Shown here: positions 2,824 through 32,443 of the stretch, one piece after another
How the letters are laid out: every line of letters begins with the position of its first letter
How positions within the stretch are numbered: the stretch's first letter is position 1
Program-made: the position numbers and the translations under genes
Notes under the pieces: generated by a model
Told to the model about the DNA's origin: nothing
The model's input: only the letters and a program-made list of their open reading frames with translations
Database searches by the model: none
Sequence record: BK067788.1
DNA: 32,443 bases
Strand: one strand, 5' to 3'

Positions 2824-3234
2824 TCATACTGTCAACTCCATTAATGGTTTTTTAATATCTCTAAATTCCGTAATCTTATCAAGTAAGGACCAAAGTTCTT
2901 TTGATTCAGGTGTTATCTTTACTTGGTGGATGATTCCTTTCTTCAGATATACTTTTAGAATACGATAAGGTTTTGAACCTCCTTGAACTTTTAATGATAT
3001 AAAAGAGTGTAATCCAACTAGTATTTCTTTATCTTTGTGATTTTTATCATTATTATTTTTATTTGAACATTTTTCACTACAATATTTTTTATTTGGGTGA
3101 CCTGTAACATGATTCCCACATATAGGACAGGTTCTACCAATTCCTTTTAAAAATAAGACTGGTTTTGATACATATTGAATATCATAAACCTTTTTTGACT
3201 CCTTTTCAATTTTTAGAGTATTCAAAAAAAACAT
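2824..3234 (-). CDS. Zn-finger protein (CPIC...YCSEKC)
   Basis: Treble-clef-like CxxC...YCSxxC motif. Confidence 0.6.
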   Translation of the reverse strand: MFFLNTLKIEKESKKVYDIQYVSKPVLFLKGIGRTCPICGNHVTGHPNKKYCSEKCSNKNNNDKNHKDKEILVGLHSFISLKVQGGSKPYRILKVYLKKGIIHQVKITPESKELWSLLDKITEFRDIKKPLMELTV

Positions 3235-3488
3235 CCTCCTAACTCCAAAACTCTAGGAGGATCTAATGGCCTTGACTCAGGGGAATTTAGATTTGTTTGT
3301 GGTCTGGAATGTCTAACAACATTGCCCGAAAGATACTTATTGCATACGATGTGAGGCGTAGGCGTAACTGAGTCAAGGACATTAGCAGTATTTACGAATG
3401 AATAGTTATTAACTTTTGTTATCATTATTATTAATCTCCTTTTTTCTTTGTTCTAAAATTTCCTTTGCGATCTTGCACATTATATGGT

Positions 3489-3593
3489 TCATTGTTTTTT
3501 CACTCCACAGAATCTACATCTATCATCAGCCCAAAACAGATTATTTTTACACTCTTTGCATAACAATAATTCGTTTAATTCTTTTAATTTCAT
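3489..3593 (-). CDS. 34-aa Zn-ribbon micro-protein (MKLKELNELLLCKECKNNLFWADDRCRFCGVKKQ)
   Basis: Manual translation; two CxxC; ATGA coupling. Confidence 0.6.
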   Translation of the reverse strand: MKLKELNELLLCKECKNNLFWADDRCRFCGVKKQ

Positions 3594-3715
3594 TTCTTAC
3601 TCCTATTCCAGTAAGGACTTTTGCAGTTGGCACATCTTAAAGGCAATTCTTCAGTTCTTGGAAGCCATTCATGATTACAAACATTGCACTTGCAAACTTG
3701 TTTTTTTATTAACAT
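3590..3715 (-). CDS. 41-aa Zn-ribbon micro-protein (MLIKKQVCKCNVCNHEWLPRTEELPLRCANCKSPYWNRSKK)
   Basis: Manual translation; CxxC-HxW-PR...CxxC-SPYWN pattern typical of small archaeal Zn ribbons; TATA-like box upstream. Confidence 0.75.
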   Translation of the reverse strand: MLIKKQVCKCNVCNHEWLPRTEELPLRCANCKSPYWNRSKK

Positions 3716-3747
3716 GTAACAAGTGGTGTACACATAAGGTATTTATC
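3716..3747 (-). promoter_or_regulatory. Leaderless-type promoter with a GTAC box
   Basis: Minus strand GATAAATA 25-32 nt upstream of ATG 3715; palindrome GTGTACAC at 3726..3733. Confidence 0.5.
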
Positions 3748-3919
3748 TTTTTTGTAAATCATTTCTTATTTTATTATTATATCATAATCTTGATATTTTT
3801 ACATTATTACCTATCTTGCATTTAGGATGATGAATAGAATAATGCGTATTGCAAGTCTTAGATCTGCAAGTATCACAAGTATTACTAGCGATTTGCTCAC
3901 AGATATAGCATGACATTTT

Positions 3920-11961: not shown

Positions 11962-12216
11962 TCATTGTGGTACTCCTAGCTTGATTCGTTTGATTCCAAG
12001 TTCTAATAAGGCTACCTGGAATAACTCGTCAGGATCTTGACCGTCATACTTTCCCATCTTGATTACAAACTTTACTGCTTTGCCTGCAAAGTCTCTCCAT
12101 CCCCATATAGTATAGTTCCACTTGCCGTTTACTGCGTTAAGCTTGATTGTCATAGAACTACCATAGTAAACTTGTCGTGTAGTTAGTTCATGGATTCTTT
12201 GAGATGGAGTTGTCAT
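11962..12216 (-). CDS. Hypothetical protein
   Basis: ORF track; ATGA coupling. Confidence 0.65.
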   Translation of the reverse strand: MTTPSQRIHELTTRQVYYGSSMTIKLNAVNGKWNYTIWGWRDFAGKAVKFVIKMGKYDGQDPDELFQVALLELGIKRIKLGVPQ

Positions 12217-12353
12217 TTCTTTCTCTCCAGCTTGTCAAGCACAAAGTTGACCATCCAATCAATAGAAGTGTTTGGTGCAAACTCTCCATACTTTCTAAGT
12301 CTTTCAATAGTAGTGCATTTGATTTCTGGCCTGACTATTGTTTCTTCTTTCAT
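12213..12353 (-). CDS. 46-aa ribbon-helix-helix-like DNA-binding protein (MKEETIVRPEIKCTTIERLRKYGEFAPNTSIDWMVNFVLDKLERKK)
   Basis: Manual translation; strand-helix-turn-helix pattern with S-x-D-x-x-V-x-x-x-L-D second helix; coupled on both sides. Confidence 0.55.
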   Translation of the reverse strand: MKEETIVRPEIKCTTIERLRKYGEFAPNTSIDWMVNFVLDKLERKK

Positions 12354-12541
12354 TGGTTTCTTTGTCTCCATTCATTGACTTGCTTTAAAGTTGCAAGAGT
12401 GTTTTCTCTTACATATTGTTTGGCCAGTGCCATAGCTTCTTTCTTTGTATGTGTTCCATCCTCAAGGAATACTTTATACGATTCAGTAATTAGCTCCCCT
12501 TTATGATACCACTTTTCATTTAATTCGTCAAACACTTTCAT
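12350..12541 (-). CDS. First gene of the leftward operon, hypothetical
   Basis: ORF track; TATA-like box 24-31 nt upstream. Confidence 0.65.
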   Translation of the reverse strand: MKVFDELNEKWYHKGELITESYKVFLEDGTHTKKEAMALAKQYVRENTLATLKQVNEWRQRNQ

Positions 12542-12641
12542 GTACTCTAGGGTACGTTTGCGTACTATAAGAACTTGTTGTTGTCATGCGTACAGGCGTC
12601 AGACCGATATGTTAATAACGTACGTTCCCGTACACCATTCT
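12542..12641. promoter_or_regulatory. Divergent twin promoter with six GTAC boxes
   Basis: GTAC at 12542, 12552, 12562, 12590, 12620, 12630; TCTTATAG (minus, 12572..12565) and GTTAATAA (plus, 12611..12618), each 24-31 nt upstream of its ATG. Confidence 0.7.
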
Positions 12642-12827
12642 ATGGAAACGTCATTAGAAACAAAACCACTTTCAAATGAAGCAATTGGAGTATTATGTAG
12701 TGAATTATTTTTACAATTAGATTACATTCAAGAATCAGGAAACAAATATGGTAACATTGACCTTGCTAAACAATTAGTAAAAAGATTGAATCAATCCATA
12801 CCAGTTAAGGATAGAATTAGAAAATGA
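12642..12827 (+). CDS. First gene of the rightward operon, 61 aa (METSLETKPLSNEAIG...)
   Basis: Start reassigned from 12540 to ATG 12642 using promoter geometry. Confidence 0.6.
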   Translation: METSLETKPLSNEAIGVLCSELFLQLDYIQESGNKYGNIDLAKQLVKRLNQSIPVKDRIRK

Positions 12828-13194: not shown

Positions 13195-13354
13195 ACCAAG
13201 ATTTAAAGAAACAATATCAGTTGAAGATGTCAGACAGAGGCATATTGACTTAGAAGTAGCACAAGAAGAACACTTCAAAGCAATTCAAGACATTAGGAAA
13301 GAAATGGGTGAACTATTTGACACCTATTGGGATTTGGTTCATCTTGACAACTAA
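13184..13354 (+). CDS. Small coiled-coil protein (MTTKPRFKETISVEDV...)
   Basis: Part of track ORF 13139..13354; later ATG preferred because of the upstream micro-ORF. Confidence 0.55.
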   Translation: MTTKPRFKETISVEDVRQRHIDLEVAQEEHFKAIQDIRKEMGELFDTYWDLVHLDN

Positions 13355-14231
13355 AATAGACGGTCTGGCACAATACCATATTCGTGAAGAACCAAACCAA
13401 ATAATTGAACGTGCATTAGATTTAGGAAAAACTAATCTATATTGTCTATTTTCAGGAGGGAAGGATTCTACTACTGCTAGTGATTTGGTAGCAACTCAAT
13501 ATCCTGAATATTACAAAGGAAACGTCTATACTATGACTGGAATGTCTCTAAGAGAATCAAGATGGTTTGTTACTCAACAATGCCATGAACAGAATAGACC
13601 TTTGTTTTTTACATGGGCTAAAAAAAACTACGTTGATTGGGTTTTAGAAAATGGATTTGGTGGGCAAGGTGTACATAATATTGTTATGTTCAAACTAAAG
13701 TTTCTTTCTTGGAGAATGTTTCTACGAGGTAAAGAAGATAAATCTGCATTTATCTCAGGAGTGAGAAAAAAGGAATCTGTCAGACGTAGTAACAGATTAG
13801 CATATAAGAATCCAATAGACTTTGATAATAAAACATGTATGATAAAACCAATTTTCTATAAGAATGGTCTTTGGTTATGGGATTACATAGCAAAACAAAA
13901 TCTAAAGGTTTCACCTGTAAATGATATTCTTGGAATATCAGGAGATTGTTTATGTGGATGCTTTGCAGAGAAACATGAGATTAAGTTAATTGAGAAATAT
14001 TATCCATATATGTTCAGTGCTATAAAATGGCTAGAAAAAGAGATTCAAAGACGTGGTAGTAAAACAGCATTAAAACATCCAACTTGGGGATCAGGTGCAT
14101 CATTAGAGGACATTGAAATGCAAACTCAGATTAAGAACTGGTTTGCAGAATGTGAAGAAGATGAAGGTTTGGAACCAAGCACATTATCTATCGAAGAATA
14201 TTGTACGGAATCTTGTTCGGTGACTGTCTAA
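13344..14231 (+). CDS. PAPS-reductase-family (adenine nucleotide alpha hydrolase / PP-loop, DndC/CysH-like) protein
   Basis: LFSGGKDS PP-loop, GVRKKESVRR, KPI...W..I, C-terminal DCLCGCF Cys cluster; likely TTG start at 13344. Confidence 0.85.
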   Translation: MTTKIDGLAQYHIREEPNQIIERALDLGKTNLYCLFSGGKDSTTASDLVATQYPEYYKGNVYTMTGMSLRESRWFVTQQCHEQNRPLFFTWAKKNYVDWVLENGFGGQGVHNIVMFKLKFLSWRMFLRGKEDKSAFISGVRKKESVRRSNRLAYKNPIDFDNKTCMIKPIFYKNGLWLWDYIAKQNLKVSPVNDILGISGDCLCGCFAEKHEIKLIEKYYPYMFSAIKWLEKEIQRRGSKTALKHPTWGSGASLEDIEMQTQIKNWFAECEEDEGLEPSTLSIEEYCTESCSVTV

Positions 14232-17273: not shown

Positions 17274-17957
17274 GTGAAAGTCCTCAATCTCTATTCTGGC
17301 ATAGGTGGCAATCGGAAGTTATGGAAGGATGTAGAAGTTACAGCAGTAGAAATTAATCCAGAAGTGGCCTCTATCTATCAAGATCTTTATCCACAAGACA
17401 AAGTAATCGTTGGAGATGCACACCAATATCTATTAGAACACTTCAAGGAGTTTGACTACATTTGGTCTAGTCCTTCATGCCAAAGCCATTCTAAGTTTAG
17501 AAAGAATGTAGCATGTCAAGTTAGGAATGATAATCCAGGTGGGCGATATGCAAAGCCAGTTTATCCAGACTTGCATTTATACGAAGAAGTAATATTCTTA
17601 CAGCATTACTTCAAAGGAAAGTATTGTGTCGAGAATGTTGTGGCCTATTATGAACCGTTAATCAAGCCTCAATTAATACAGAGGCATTGGTTCTGGGCTA
17701 ACTACCATATTGAAGATAAACACTTTGAACGTGATAATATTGCTAGAGGTTCACAGAAAGAACATGAGAATAGAATAGGAGTTGACTTGTCAAAGTACAA
17801 GGTTAGTTCAAGGAAGAAAGGTCAGAGTAGAAGTGAAGTATTAGAGAAGGACCAGATACTTCGTAATTGTGTAGATCCTTTATTGGGCTTGCATGTCTTT
17901 GAATCCTCGTTTACAAAACAAGTTATCTTATCAACGCTTGGGTTTGAAAGTCCATGA
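17274..17957 (+). CDS. Short C5-cytosine DNA methyltransferase-like protein
   Basis: LNLYSGIGG (motif I), AVEI (II), GDA (III), SSPSCQ (IV), VENV (VI), QRH (VIII). Confidence 0.8.
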   Translation: MKVLNLYSGIGGNRKLWKDVEVTAVEINPEVASIYQDLYPQDKVIVGDAHQYLLEHFKEFDYIWSSPSCQSHSKFRKNVACQVRNDNPGGRYAKPVYPDLHLYEEVIFLQHYFKGKYCVENVVAYYEPLIKPQLIQRHWFWANYHIEDKHFERDNIARGSQKEHENRIGVDLSKYKVSSRKKGQSRSEVLEKDQILRNCVDPLLGLHVFESSFTKQVILSTLGFESP

Positions 17958-24300: not shown

Positions 24301-24786
24301 TTATTTAATATCTCGTTTTTTGCATACATTGTTTCTCCATCTCCATTGATTATGAACCAAATTTCTATGATCTTTAACTTCTCTAGTAGCATTTTTTCTT
24401 CGTATGCTCTGACTTTGATTTTTACATTTAAGACAACGTCTATGACCTTTTGTTAAGGCATATTTTTCTAGATTATCACCTGATAATTCATGACCTCGTT
24501 TACAATGAGTCTTCTTTGCGTTTTGAGCAGCTAAACCATTTCCACGTAATGTATTCTCCTGTTGCGTTACAGCTTCTAAATGCTCAGGATTGAAACAATT
24601 TCTTTCACTACAAAGATGATCTATAACCAATCCTTTAGGAATTTGACCTTTGAATAATTCAAACATTAATCTGTGAACATTAACAACTGCATATCCATAA
24701 CGGTCTATTCTTCCAGTCCACTTCCAACAATTACCTTCTTGTTTAAAATACTCTAATTGCTTTACTATCTTCTCTAACTCTTTCAT
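24301..24786 (-). CDS. HNH homing-type endonuclease (HNH_3-like) with a C-terminal THCKRGH module
   Basis: CWKWTG...GY...VHR...IDHLC...CFNPEHLEAVTQQEN; KTHCKRGH...RRCLKC. Confidence 0.85.
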   Translation of the reverse strand: MKELEKIVKQLEYFKQEGNCWKWTGRIDRYGYAVVNVHRLMFELFKGQIPKGLVIDHLCSERNCFNPEHLEAVTQQENTLRGNGLAAQNAKKTHCKRGHELSGDNLEKYALTKGHRRCLKCKNQSQSIRRKNATREVKDHRNLVHNQWRWRNNVCKKRDIK

Positions 24787-28636: not shown

Positions 28637-28801
28637 TTAGGATGTAGATGTAGGTTCATCCTTTGGTTTGTTTTTCTTATCCTGTTGTTCCTTGTATTTT
28701 CTTGCCAATCTCTTCTTATGTGACATTATAGCAGCCATCAAAAGGCCACCCATAGCCACACAGATTTCTATTGTTGTGGTCCAGTTTGGTACAAATGGCA
28801 T
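28637..28801 (-). CDS. 54-aa single-TM micro-protein with a basic tail
   Basis: Manual translation MPFVPNWTTTIEICVAMGGLLMAAIMSHKKRLARK... Confidence 0.6.
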   Translation of the reverse strand: MPFVPNWTTTIEICVAMGGLLMAAIMSHKKRLARKYKEQQDKKNKPKDEPTSTS

Positions 28802-28944
28802 TATTTGTTCACTCTCCTACTCAGATTGAGCAAGTAGACAAGAAATTCTTCACCTGTCATTTTAAGCCCTTTGGCTTTCTTTAGACGGTATCTTTCATCG
28901 TTGAACTGATCAAGCGTACCATCTGACACGGTAATCGTTGTCAT
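28801..28944 (-). CDS. 47-aa RHH/CopG-like DNA-binding protein (MTTITVSDGTLDQFNDERYRLKKAKGLKMTGEEFLVYLLNLSRRVNK)
   Basis: Manual translation; MTTITVS strand, helix, then T-x-EEF-L-x-x-LL helix typical of archaeal RHH proteins. Confidence 0.65.
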   Translation of the reverse strand: MTTITVSDGTLDQFNDERYRLKKAKGLKMTGEEFLVYLLNLSRRVNK

Positions 28945-30674: not shown

Positions 30675-31133
30675 TTATGAAATCCACTCCAAAGTCATAG
30701 ATTTTCTAAATGGTCTTAAGCGTTGATTTTTATTAAAACATATTCTACAAGCTCTTTTACCTCTACTAATTTCATATTTAATAAGATTATCACCTTCCAA
30801 TAAATGACCACTTGGACAATACTTTTTTGCTTTGTTTATTGCTGAGAATCCGATTCCTCTACTAGCATTAACTCCTTGTGTAACTGCTTCCAAATGATCT
30901 GGATTTACACACGAGTAATTACCACACAGGTGATCTATAACCAATCCCTGAGGTATCTCACCTTTGAATAACATATAAGATAGTCTATGGGCAAAGAAGA
31001 ACTTACCTCTTACATATAATACTCCATATTGTAACCAGTTCTTTGCACCTATCCATGACCAACAATAAGTATCTTCATCAAATCTAATCTTAGATAGTAA
31101 TTGATTAGGTAAGATGGCATATCCCTTTTGCAT
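30675..31133 (-). CDS. HNH homing-type endonuclease (HNH_3-like), paralog of 24301..24786
   Basis: CWSWIG...AHR...GEIPQGLVIDHLC...CVNPDHLEAVTQ; KYCPSGH...RACRIC. Confidence 0.85.
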   Translation of the reverse strand: MQKGYAILPNQLLSKIRFDEDTYCWSWIGAKNWLQYGVLYVRGKFFFAHRLSYMLFKGEIPQGLVIDHLCGNYSCVNPDHLEAVTQGVNASRGIGFSAINKAKKYCPSGHLLEGDNLIKYEISRGKRACRICFNKNQRLRPFRKSMTLEWIS

Positions 31134-31297: not shown

Positions 31298-31912
31298 ATG
31301 CAAGCTAGAACCAACTACATAACCCCTGATCAGTTCAAACAATTGATTGATGGAGTAGATACATTAGAACTTAAGAAGTTTAATCATGAGGATGTAAAGA
31401 TGTTATTCAAAGTTTGTTATTGGATGGCACTTAGGATAGGAGAAGCTTTGAAGATTAATGTGGAAGACTTTGATTTTGAAGTTATGCAAGTATATCTAGG
31501 AAAGACCAAGACAGAGAAACAAGGATTTGCCAAGATACCAGAGGTATTTAGATTAGAGTTATTGGAATACCTACTAGATAAGAAAGGTCCATTGTTTCCA
31601 GGCATGAATAGATTTATTGTTTCTTATTGGTTAAAGACTCTAGGTAAGCGTTACAAGATAAAGGCTTTGACTACTTCACAAGAAGATACCGAAGAAAAGA
31701 CAATCACCCACATCTTTAGAAAATCAATGGCTAAGGATATGTTCTATGGTATACATGGAGAGAAAGCACCTTTGACCTTTGTTTCTGATACTTTAAGACA
31801 TAAGGGTAAGAATAGACTTGCAGCTACACAGGAGTATCTTAAGATAACAGGCGAAGATCTAGATGATTTTTGGAAGCGTATAGCTAAGAAAGAAGAAGAA
31901 TCTCAGGTATGA
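31298..31912 (+). CDS. int: Minimal tyrosine recombinase/integrase
   Basis: Catalytic set R (ALRIGE), K (KTK), HxxR (HIFR), H (LRH), Y (TQEY); 204 aa. Confidence 0.9.
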   Translation: MQARTNYITPDQFKQLIDGVDTLELKKFNHEDVKMLFKVCYWMALRIGEALKINVEDFDFEVMQVYLGKTKTEKQGFAKIPEVFRLELLEYLLDKKGPLFPGMNRFIVSYWLKTLGKRYKIKALTTSQEDTEEKTITHIFRKSMAKDMFYGIHGEKAPLTFVSDTLRHKGKNRLAATQEYLKITGEDLDDFWKRIAKKEEESQV

Positions 31913-32290: not shown

Positions 32291-32443
32291 TCAGTTTACC
32301 AGGTCTTCAATTGTATTTCGTTGTTCAATCCATGTCTTATAAGGCAAGTGCAAGACTTTCTTAACTTTTCTTATGCGGTCCTGTCTTTCCCAAACTTGTC
32401 TTTGTTTCTTTTTCAATAGTAACAGTCTGACTTGTTCATGCAT
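32291..32443 (-). CDS. 3' part (50 aa) of the protein starting at 186 if circular, or a standalone small ORF
   Basis: MHEQVRLLLLKKKQRQVWERQDRIRKVKK...DLVN*. Confidence 0.6.
   Translation of the reverse strand: MHEQVRLLLLKKKQRQVWERQDRIRKVKKVLHLPYKTWIEQRNTIEDLVN

Follow-up and report, generated by a model that had tools for sequence, protein, structure and literature searches.

The intergenic DNA between ORF35 and ORF36 of the Nitrosopumilaceae spindle-shaped virus NTM1 (Terrafusivirus michiganense, BK067788) is best read as a conserved bidirectional regulatory cassette of 106 bp, a putative genetic switch of an ordinary kind, and it is the first such switch traced in the Nipumfusiviridae. We think it probable that the small protein encoded by ORF34, most likely an RHH-type dimer, binds the phased GTAC palindromes of this cassette, and that it would thereby keep down transcription of its own operon and, in most cases, of the variable genes on the divergent side.

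The window analysed, 32,443 nucleotides long, is the whole genome of NTM1, an archaeal virus from soil that belongs to the family Nipumfusiviridae. A divergent regulatory cassette had been proposed in the preliminary description of this DNA, and the conserved bidirectional layout, with putative operators between TATA box and start codon, bears this out. To our knowledge, there is no earlier account of how viruses of ammonia-oxidizing Thaumarchaeota regulate their genes, and the paper describing these genomes makes no mention of promoters.

Two predicted back-to-back core promoters

The 100 bp between ORF35 (12350..12541, minus strand, 63 aa), with which the leftward operon begins, and ORF36 (12642..12827 with its revised start, plus strand, 61 aa), which opens the rightward arm, are best explained as two back-to-back archaeal core promoters for predicted leaderless mRNAs. 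On each side an A/T-rich 8-mer is found, centred about 26-27 nt upstream of the start, as in archaeal TATA core promoters. The TATA-like box on the left (12566..12573, minus-strand sequence TTCTTATA) abuts the third GTAC box and ends 24 nt before the ATG at 12541, and the right one (TTAATAAC, 12612..12619, plus strand) abuts the fourth and ends 22 nt before the ATG at 12642, so that the phased boxes do lie between TATA-like box and ATG on both sides, as first described. NTM1 promoters as a rule have a TATA-like 8-mer about 27 nt ahead of the start codon (a dozen other gene starts), and the SSV1 record has the same geometry of box A, start site and ATG. Given this norm, the GTAC boxes are placed downstream of the TATA box. 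The geometry is the same in all relatives, all of which have an A/T-rich 8-mer at the left TATA position. From this spacing we infer the transcription start sites.

The start of ORF36 at 12642, used in the preliminary description and different from the deposited one at 12609, is backed by conservation: the ATG is conserved and CTATGG is kept in all variants, whereas the deposited start is not conserved, and is out of frame or interrupted in NTT2. An arrangement in which each TATA box serves the distal gene, the boxes lying in 5' UTRs or at BRE positions, was rejected, because two loci (L149 and L154) have the three boxes and the upstream TATA box with no divergent partner, and because throughout the genome TATA boxes typically stand at -27 from the ATG.

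Phased GTAC boxes

Six GTAC sites are present, at 12542, 12552, 12562, 12590, 12620 and 12630, all as originally reported; they include groups of three and two at a 10-bp phase, and five of the six read CGTAC on one or the other strand. The putative left operator OL (12542..12565) holds three of them (12542-45, 12552-55 and 12562-65) and fills the interval from the left TATA box to the ATG of ORF35; its second and third boxes form the palindrome GTACGTTTGCGTAC. The putative right operator OR (12620..12633) is the palindrome GTACGTTCCCGTAC, that is, two boxes 10 bp apart. With three boxes on one side and two on the other, the layout lacks mirror symmetry, and the term near-symmetric has to be dropped.

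The sixth box, at 12590, is indeed centred at 12591.5, the midpoint between the ATGs at 12541 (minus strand) and 12642 (plus strand), but it is not conserved, whereas the five others are invariant. Of the 10 close variants only three contain it, namely the window, L070 and L143, and in L143 it is displaced by 2 bp. On comparative grounds it belongs to a separate conserved dyad-like element (12586..12599, ATGCGTACAGGCGT), which lies midway between the two TATA boxes and is kept, with the family consensus RTGCST-N2/3-ASGCAY, in 13 of 14 divergent cassettes. The functional candidates are thus the five boxes only.

Six GTAC sites per 100 bp were reached in 0 of 1000 dinucleotide-preserving shuffles, and a phased triple in 1 of 1000. 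No other 100-bp stretch of the window contains three or more GTAC sites, and the 14-bp palindrome GTACG-N4-CGTAC is found in the genome only at 12552 and 12620 (0.11 expected). No phased GTAC pair was found at other viral promoters, and in NTT2 such pairs are likewise confined to the cassette locus. A repetition of the layout at the 3715 promoter, suggested initially, was not recovered: there is a single GTAC there (3728), with no phasing, and since seven other GTAC sites are intergenic, chance alone would put a lone site into one of the roughly 20 promoters. The Zn-ribbon gene at 3715 has no homolog in the relatives.

Could the palindromes act otherwise than as operators? They might form RNA or single-strand hairpins (GUACG-N4-CGUAC, in 5' leaders), or be methylation or restriction targets of ORF53; we hold this to be very improbable. 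The 14-nt palindromes do fold into 5-bp stems (-4.6 and -5.0 kcal/mol, z about -3.5), but the region as a whole shows no significant structure (z = -1.7 and 0.14) and matches nothing in Rfam, and an RNA element was rejected on these grounds. Moreover, the G/C extension of the stem is lost in distant relatives, while GTAC and the 10-bp phase are kept, and the boxes are probably not transcribed, since the TATA boxes abut them. ORF53 is C5-methyltransferase-like, with a C5 DNA methylase N-terminal domain; however, GTAC is not strongly avoided genome-wide (77 sites observed in the window, 80-101 expected).

Conservation in related loci

The comparison covered 17 distinct related loci, including 10 close variants. 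Most were retrieved via ORF34 homologs, and the co-occurrence of boxes and ORF34 is therefore partly built in. A TATA box followed directly by GTAC-N6-GTAC-N6-GTAC stands right before the start of an operon with an ORF34 homolog in 16 of the 17 loci; conservation in relatives had been named as a check in the preliminary description. In the 10 close variants all 20 bases of the five boxes are invariant; variation is seen in the spacers within each operator and in the 50-bp middle, and non-homologous genes take the place of the flanking first genes. The three OL boxes also precede the operon of the ORF34 homolog in L149, L154, L155, L156, L157 and L159. Two of these (L149 and L154) have ORF34 homologs of 46-53% identity and unalignable flanking DNA, with the three boxes kept. 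In L150, whose ORF34 homolog is distant, the middle OL box reads GATC. OR is found in 14 of 15 loci with a divergent partner gene (it is missing in L157); its GTAC sites and flanking G/C are invariant, and its four central bases vary.

That the cluster arose by chance, or is conserved through plain kinship with no function, has a practically negligible probability. Many of the loci are close relatives (78-100% ORF34 identity), but the boxes persist where spacers, middle region and flanking genes have diverged, and they recur in loci that cannot be aligned; together with the shuffles, this effectively refutes chance clustering.

In the reverse direction, a metagenome scan with the full cassette returned more than 120 loci. 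Among the matches listed, the promoter-like cassettes (L067, L070, L078, L080, L113 and L143) all encode an ORF34 homolog. The others are unrelated GC-rich tandem GTAC arrays, which dominate the output and make the cassette pattern less specific than estimated. The exact right-operator pattern gave one unrelated chance match in viral contigs (L016, within a gene), and in genome contigs 12 bacterial chance matches and no archaeal provirus. NBC1, a member of the Nipumfusiviridae with no ORF34 that served as a negative control, has no such cassette. A search for related loci with ORF40 matched only NTM1's own contig.

Both arms, described earlier as accessory, are indeed accessory and variable. 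NTT2, L013 and L015 lack ORF35, and L014 has a different gene in its place. For the right arm NTT2 has no homolog whatever, and non-homologous genes stand at the position of ORF36 in relatives.

The same DNA might be a replication origin or a partition (centromere-like) site, its boxes being iterons for a Rep or centromere-binding protein and promoter control being secondary. Small centromere-binding RHH proteins, ParG and omega among them, do recognise short-repeat arrays within the promoters of their own genes, and the cumulative GC skew has its minimum at 12-13 kb. The skew, however, follows the coding strand at every strand switch and gives no independent origin signal; as it merely tracks gene orientation, the replication-origin reading was rejected. 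Neither a Rep nor a ParA gene lies beside the cassette, the only P-loop ATPase (ORF76) being 16 kb off, and the boxes are just three plus two, always exactly between TATA box and start, a geometry defined by the promoter. We consider an origin or partition site improbable.

ORF34 as the candidate repressor

The small gene at 12213..12353 (minus strand, 46 aa) is not unannotated, as had been stated: it is ORF34 in BK067788, with no function assigned there. It is the second gene of the leftward operon, its start overlapping the stop of ORF35, and in every locus it is the first to third gene of the three-box operon. It is also the most conserved protein common to NTM1 and NTT2 (82.6%). Its family has 15 members, in which R8-P9-E10-I11-K12, T15, L19, D32 and N36 are invariant, the N-terminal RPEIK being found in 15 of 15 homologs. 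The earlier suggestion that a neighbouring small protein is the regulator is thus upheld to the extent that ORF34 is the best candidate binder.

The RHH-like character attributed to it fared less evenly: the predicted topology is consistent with it, but the searches by sequence and by fold all came out negative. An AlphaFold2 monomer model (pLDDT 81.6) has an extended segment (6-12) and two helices (13-20 and 31-45); this strand-helix-helix order fits the RHH topology, with the strand unpaired in the monomer model and a predicted inter-helix loop of 10 residues, longer than in canonical RHH proteins. The alternating invariant R8, E10 and K12 are compatible with a predicted RHH-type strand. ORF34 and its homologs gave no significant RHH match in Pfam, PHROGs or NCBIfam (the last returned nothing), the only Pfam match of ORF34 being DUF6718, below the cut-off (E = 0.02). 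PDB sequence and profile searches found nothing relevant, and Foldseek against PDB and BFVD gave no match at E < 1, a search of low power for a 46-residue monomer model. Alignment with hhalign gave a probability of 0.5% against SSV1 E51 and was not significant against the 28801 ORF. All that an exhaustive HMMER search returned was a pair of distant small homologs and a leucine-rich-repeat protein, the latter a spurious match.

The 28801 ORF (28801..28944, minus strand, 47 aa), correctly described as unannotated, had been put forward as a second RHH-like protein. Its predicted topology is again strand-helix-helix (AlphaFold2 single-sequence model, pLDDT 81.9; extended 1-7, helices 8-25 and 31-45), but sequence and fold searches were non-significant: Pfam, NCBIfam and PDB sequences gave no match, and its top Foldseek matches, RHH-type ones among them (TCP domain, pCXC100 ParB, ParD2), all have E > 3. 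For ORF34 and the 28801 ORF alike, an RHH fold is thus a prediction from topology only. As the 28801 ORF has no homolog outside the NTM1 genome, hence none in any relative that keeps the boxes, it cannot be their conserved binder, and it is probably not part of the switch.

It is unlikely that the boxes are operators for a binder other than ORF34, namely a transcription factor of the ammonia-oxidizing host, ORF33 or the 28801 ORF. ORF34 has no DNA-binding domain recognisable by sequence, and promoters of archaeal viruses are known to be regulated by factors of the host, Sta1 for example (PMC5569661). ORF33 (11962..12216, minus strand, 84 aa) follows ORF34 in most relatives and so co-occurs with the boxes in most loci; it is, however, weakly conserved (32-97% identity) and was not detected in four loci (L149, L150, L154 and L157), whereas ORF34 and the boxes are near-invariant. 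The 28801 ORF fails for want of homologs in relatives that keep the boxes, and the restriction of phased GTAC pairs to this one viral promoter region also counts against another binder.

Proposed mechanism

With ORF34 as the binder, one dimer would occupy each GTAC box, which fits the odd number (three) of palindromic 4-bp boxes at a 10-bp phase; dimers on adjacent boxes would share one face of the helix and cooperate in binding. The protein being most likely an RHH-type dimer, the strand with the invariant R8-x-E10-x-K12 would make the contacts in the major groove. With the stretch from about -22 to +1 occupied, the TATA box would stay accessible, but RNA polymerase recruitment or promoter opening would be blocked. 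Blocking this interval would result in repression of ORF34's own operon and, in most relatives, also of the divergent arm of variable accessory genes. Because the candidate repressor is encoded inside the operon that it would repress, the control would be a negative autoregulation, unlike that exerted from a separate lysogenic transcript. The part in the lysogeny/induction decision suggested at first is a mere possibility: an integrase is encoded, but this self-repressing layout suggests homeostatic control rather than a bistable switch.

Known systems

Regulators of archaeal viruses are mostly small autoregulating repressors, many of them RHH proteins acting on repeated sites (PMC5569661, PMC9608457). 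In SSV1, the RHH repressor F55, of ~50 aa, binds repeated sites in the T5, T6, Tind and Tlys promoters, its own promoter included (PMC9608457). SSV1 (Fuselloviridae) and NTM1 are both spindle-shaped archaeal viruses with an integrase; in NTM1 this is ORF79 (31298..31912, plus strand), a tyrosine recombinase (Pfam PF00589, E = 3.5e-9, above the curated cut-off), which provides context for a possible temperate lifestyle. Both have repeated short sites in divergent early promoters whose transcripts carry a variable gene pool, and as with F55, the repeated sites of NTM1 (three plus two boxes) lie in divergent promoters including that of the candidate repressor. However, F55 comes from its own lysogenic or carrier-state transcript, whereas ORF34 lies within the three-box operon, one of those controlled. 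The F55 site is an 11-nt tandem repeat (ATAGATAGAGT) and not a set of 4-bp palindromes at a 10-bp phase, and the hosts differ (Sulfolobales for SSV1, mesophilic ammonia oxidizers for NTM1). ORF34 has no detectable sequence similarity to the SSV1 RHH protein E51, F55 itself being outside this comparison. SvtR of SIRV1 and AvtR of AFV6 are also small autoregulating RHH repressors, which recognise imperfect inverted repeats and form oligomers along the DNA (PMC5569661). They act on long, AT-rich sites that often lie away from the promoter, whereas the NTM1 boxes are short, contain G/C and lie strictly between TATA box and start.

In the immI region of phage P22, Arc (~50 aa) is an early product of one of the two divergent operons (Pant/Pmnt); its cooperating dimers bind neighbouring subsites, about one helical turn apart, inside promoters that overlap each other, and repress both, including its own. 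The likeness to NTM1 is an analogy of layout, with no homology shown: P22 is a bacterial phage with sigma-70 promoters and one 21-bp operator, NTM1 has archaeal TATA promoters and two operators 58 bp apart. The archaeal repressors MDR1, LrpA and Phr act downstream of the TATA box, at operators over the transcription start, and block RNA polymerase recruitment after TBP/TFB binding. They are cellular proteins of larger folds (DtxR, Lrp and wHTH), whereas for NTM1 such a mechanism is suggested by the position of the operators. Since SSV1, SIRV1 and phage P22 already show this design, our analysis carries an established principle over to another lineage and introduces no new one.

Significance

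For the sequence record, the analysis yields one corrected start codon and two unannotated small genes. A bolder possibility, which we regard as doubtful, is that ORF34 founds a new family of minimal repressors (41-53 aa) reading a 4-bp palindrome at a strict 10-bp phase, the 106-bp cassette being the master early or lysogeny switch of Terrafusivirus and a bidirectional 'expression platform' for swapped non-homologous accessory genes. If true, ammonia-oxidizing archaea, which lack genetic tools, would thereby gain their first defined repressor/operator/promoter module. Such a module could serve as an orthogonal regulatory part for organisms with no genetic system. For the virus family, a compact candidate repressor-operator pair with two defined, predicted leaderless promoters, backed by comparative genomics, offers a directly testable model of early-gene control in the Nipumfusiviridae.

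GTAC boxes at a divergent promoter

All six GTAC tetramers listed in the preliminary description are found between the divergent start codons of ORF35 (ATG 12541, minus strand) and ORF36 (ATG 12642, plus strand), at positions 12542, 12552, 12562, 12590, 12620 and 12630. Genome-wide, 77 GTAC are observed for 80 to 101 expected under Markov models, so that the tetramer is not strongly avoided, and outside this 106-bp cassette no 100-bp stretch of the window has three. Of 1000 dinucleotide-preserving shuffles, 694 reached at most three GTAC in any 100 bp, 81 reached four, 7 reached five and none reached six; the phased triple GTAC-N6-GTAC-N6-GTAC arose once. The 14-bp palindrome GTACG-N4-CGTAC, formed by boxes 2-3 and again by boxes 4-5, has two genomic occurrences (0.11 expected), both in the cassette. 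The cluster is therefore real and highly non-random, and chance is excluded as an explanation.

TATA-like boxes are present at both promoters, as previously claimed, each abutting the first GTAC box: on the minus strand at 12566-12573 (TTCTTATA, ending 24 nt before ATG 12541) and on the plus strand at 12612-12619 (TTAATAAC, ending 22 nt before ATG 12642). Some 12 other gene starts in the window likewise have an A/T-rich 8-mer whose centre lies about 27 nt upstream of the start codon; leaderless archaeal transcripts show this geometry, among them T3, T4 and T9 as annotated in the SSV1 record. With TATA at about -27, as in such transcripts, the GTAC boxes would fall downstream of the TATA box and ahead of the predicted start site. 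A recurrence of this layout at the 3715 promoter was not borne out: a single GTAC lies there, 12 nt before a genuine, though unannotated, 41-aa zinc-ribbon gene (CxxC...CxxC; 3590-3715, minus strand) with its own TATA box at -27. One coincidental match of this kind is expected, as the genome has seven further GTAC sites between genes and about 20 promoters; no homolog of this gene was present in any of the relatives compared.

The deposited start of ORF36, at 12609, would place the right-hand TATA box and the two GTAC boxes next to it within coding sequence. ATG 12642 lies inside CTATGG, kept in all relatives, and is the likelier start, because in NTT2, the second Terrafusivirus genome, a stop closes the frame upstream of the conserved ATG. 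The start in the record is probably wrong.

Conservation of the cassette

Related loci were gathered via homologs of ORF34 (46 aa; 12213-12353, minus strand, leftward operon), the NTT2 genome and exact DNA-pattern scans. Ten distinct close variants of the cassette were obtained, with a CAT-to-ATG span of 106 to 108 bp in every one. Conservation in relatives holds for five of the six boxes (12542, 12552, 12562, 12620 and 12630), which are invariant in 10/10 close variants, but not for the midpoint box at 12590. Equally invariant are the G/C bases flanking the palindromes, both TATA boxes and the motif CTATG where the rightward gene starts. Variation is seen at the four bases in the centre of each palindrome, in the spacer that separates box 1 from box 2, and over the 50 bp in the middle. 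On the left, some relatives have ORF35; NTT2, L013 and L015 lack it, and in L014 a zinc-ribbon gene stands in its place. On the right, the first gene differs among relatives, with at least five unrelated ones in this position, and NTT2 has no homolog of any part of the rightward arm (ORF36-54). Since the boxes are invariant while the directly flanking genes are not conserved, the cassette is constrained much more strongly than its surroundings.

The rightward first genes of all relatives begin alike, over 12-15 nt (ATGGnAnnGTCA; window 12642-12656), even though they are non-homologous in the rest of their length. The shared beginning could act as an initially transcribed signal or mark a boundary of recombination at which genes are swapped beside the cassette. 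In NTT2, the first gene behind the right promoter is an unannotated zinc-ribbon ORF of about 51 aa (CxxC...CxxC; 3350-3505, plus strand).

Remoter ORF34-family proteins (46-66% identity) came from profile and exhaustive searches. Although the DNA around their genes is not alignable to the window, a TATA-like box is each time followed by GTAC-N6-GTAC-N6-GTAC and, 0-2 nt on, by a start codon. This is the case in L149 (boxes 337/347/357, ATG 363), in L154, a 27-kb groundwater contig, and in L155, L156, L157/L158 and L159; in L150, the middle box is GATC, and the divergent partner has a two-box operator. Altogether, a perfect three-box operator precedes the operon of the ORF34 homolog in 16 of 17 distinct loci, and 14 of the 17 have a two-box operator at the divergent promoter; two lack a divergent gene, and L157 has one without boxes. 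Conversely, among at least 120 metagenome matches to the full-cassette pattern, every promoter-like (non-array) one encoded an ORF34 homolog. No such cassette exists in NBC1 (L160, BK067786), of the same family, another genus and without an ORF34 homolog, where one phased GTAC pair is found for 0.2 expected by chance. Judging from these comparisons, the cassette is a conserved operator-bearing bidirectional promoter, tied to the small orphan protein family ORF34. That the boxes act as RNA hairpins or methylation targets is very unlikely, as there is no Rfam match and no significant fold, and the stems are lost in distant relatives.

Tandem arrays of at least ten units of 10-bp GTACG-N4-C occur in GC-rich metagenome contigs that are unrelated to this virus (SDBT/SDBV..., 55-62% GC; L029, L031, L045, L055, L057, L061, L068, L081, L087, L088 and many more), some units being exactly the window's GTACGTTCCC. 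These contigs encode no homologs of window proteins. Further metagenome contigs carry arrays of the 5-bp unit GTACn, or repeats bordered by 'ttcacactgc'.

The central element

The midpoint GTAC (12590) does not belong to the box set, being found only in the window, L070 and L143, with a 2-bp shift in L143. It sits within a separate conserved element of partial dyad symmetry, RTGCST-N2/3-ASGCAY (window 12586-12599), midway between the two TATA boxes. The element occupies the same place in L002 (NTT2), L007, L013-L015, L078, L080, L143, L155, L156 and L159; in L143 its symmetry is perfect (inverted repeat GTGCGT-AC-ACGCAC). Another factor, for example an activator or a host protein, may bind this element.

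NBC1 has a stretch of 947 bp without annotated genes (2940-3885), between divergent ORF9 and ORF10. It carries GTACACGCCTGTAC, which has ACGCCTGTAC in common with the central element, probably by coincidence.

ORF34 as the candidate binder

Behind the three-box operator, the ORF34 homolog is always operon gene 1, 2 or 3. ORF34 is the most conserved protein common to NTM1 and NTT2 (82.6%, versus 30-74% for the other 24), and R8, P9, E10, I11, K12, T15, L19, D32 and N36 are invariant in 15 family members. An AlphaFold2 model (9-sequence alignment, pLDDT 81.6) has an extended segment (6-12), a helix (13-20), a 10-residue loop and a second helix (31-45). This predicted strand-helix-helix order is that of ribbon-helix-helix (RHH) proteins, and a ribbon that reads DNA would be expected to show such an alternating R-x-E-x-K pattern. 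The RHH label given earlier is compatible with the predicted topology, but sequence and profile searches (Pfam, NCBIfam, PDB), Foldseek (PDB, BFVD) and hhalign against an annotated SSV1 RHH protein (E51) were all negative, with no statistical support for membership, and we therefore call ORF34 RHH-like by topology only. From its co-conservation with the operator, we infer that ORF34 is a DNA-binding protein. The odd number of boxes in the left operator (OL; 12542, 12552 and 12562) fits one twofold-symmetric ribbon reading each 4-bp palindrome and a spacing of one helical turn between dimers. The main rival explanation, binding of the boxes by a different protein, host or viral, we consider unlikely. 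The second RHH-like ORF of the preliminary description (28801-28944, minus strand) is indeed present and missing from the annotation. Homologs of it were not found outside this genome, while NTT2 and other relatives keep the boxes, so that it cannot be their conserved partner.

The genome record

Nitrosopumilaceae spindle-shaped virus isolate NTM1 (BK067788.1), to which a 3-kb test stretch of the window is 100% identical, is of rhizosphere origin, its genome being assembled from a metagenome. It is presently classified as Terrafusivirus michiganense, family Nipumfusiviridae (PMC12451623); the genome paper deals with capsid proteins and host prediction, and leaves promoters and integrases unmentioned (PMC10866085). 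All 81 genes of the record are labelled merely 'ORFn'. Functions absent from it include three HNH endonucleases, ORF3 (745-1251), ORF64 (24301-24786) and ORF78 (30675-31133), all on the minus strand, and a PAPS-reductase-like protein, ORF40 (13308-14231, plus strand). ORF53 (17274-17957, plus strand; only 227 aa) has the N-terminal part of a C5 DNA methyltransferase. ORF1 (1-186) and ORF81 (32291-32443), both on the minus strand, are probably a single gene that was cut when a circular or terminally redundant genome was linearised: the low end of ORF1 is open and the ATG of ORF81 falls exactly on the last base of the window. The IMG/VR contig exceeds the record by 99 bp. Across the window, CGCG is depleted (4.5 expected, none observed), as is GCGC (8 expected, 2 observed), GATC, AATT and TATA are moderately under-represented, and GC skew changes sign with the coding strand at 12.5, 18.2, 27.2 and 28.3 kb.

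Proposed regulation

In the mechanism that we propose, two leaderless promoters point away from each other, and 46 bp separate the starts of their TATA boxes. OL would span -24 to -1 of the leftward promoter, and the right operator (OR; 12620 and 12630) -22 to -9 of the rightward one. A bound repressor would block RNA polymerase recruitment or promoter opening, leaving the TATA box unoccluded; cellular archaeal repressors that bind downstream of the TATA box act in this way. As ORF34 is located in the OL-controlled operon, it would form a negative autoregulatory loop, which would also throttle the divergent accessory arm. The last OL and first OR boxes are 58 bp apart, start to start (about 5.5 helical turns), and thus on opposite helix faces, which makes OL-OR looping unlikely. 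A replication origin or partition site at the cassette is very improbable: the GC-skew minimum at 12-13 kb merely tracks gene orientation, as at every strand switch, and no Rep or ParA gene adjoins the cassette.

A temperate lifestyle is plausible, since ORF79 (31298-31912, plus strand) is a tyrosine integrase (Pfam PF00589, E = 3.5e-9). Scanning genome contigs with the right-operator pattern revealed no integrated copy. In SSV1, F55 is made from its own, separate lysogenic transcript (PMC9608457), whereas the layout proposed for NTM1 is self-repressing. That the cassette is a lysogeny switch, as had been suggested, is doubtful.

Circuits of the kind proposed are already known from SSV1 F55, SvtR and P22 Arc; what would be new is the presence of such a circuit in a virus family without previously described regulation.
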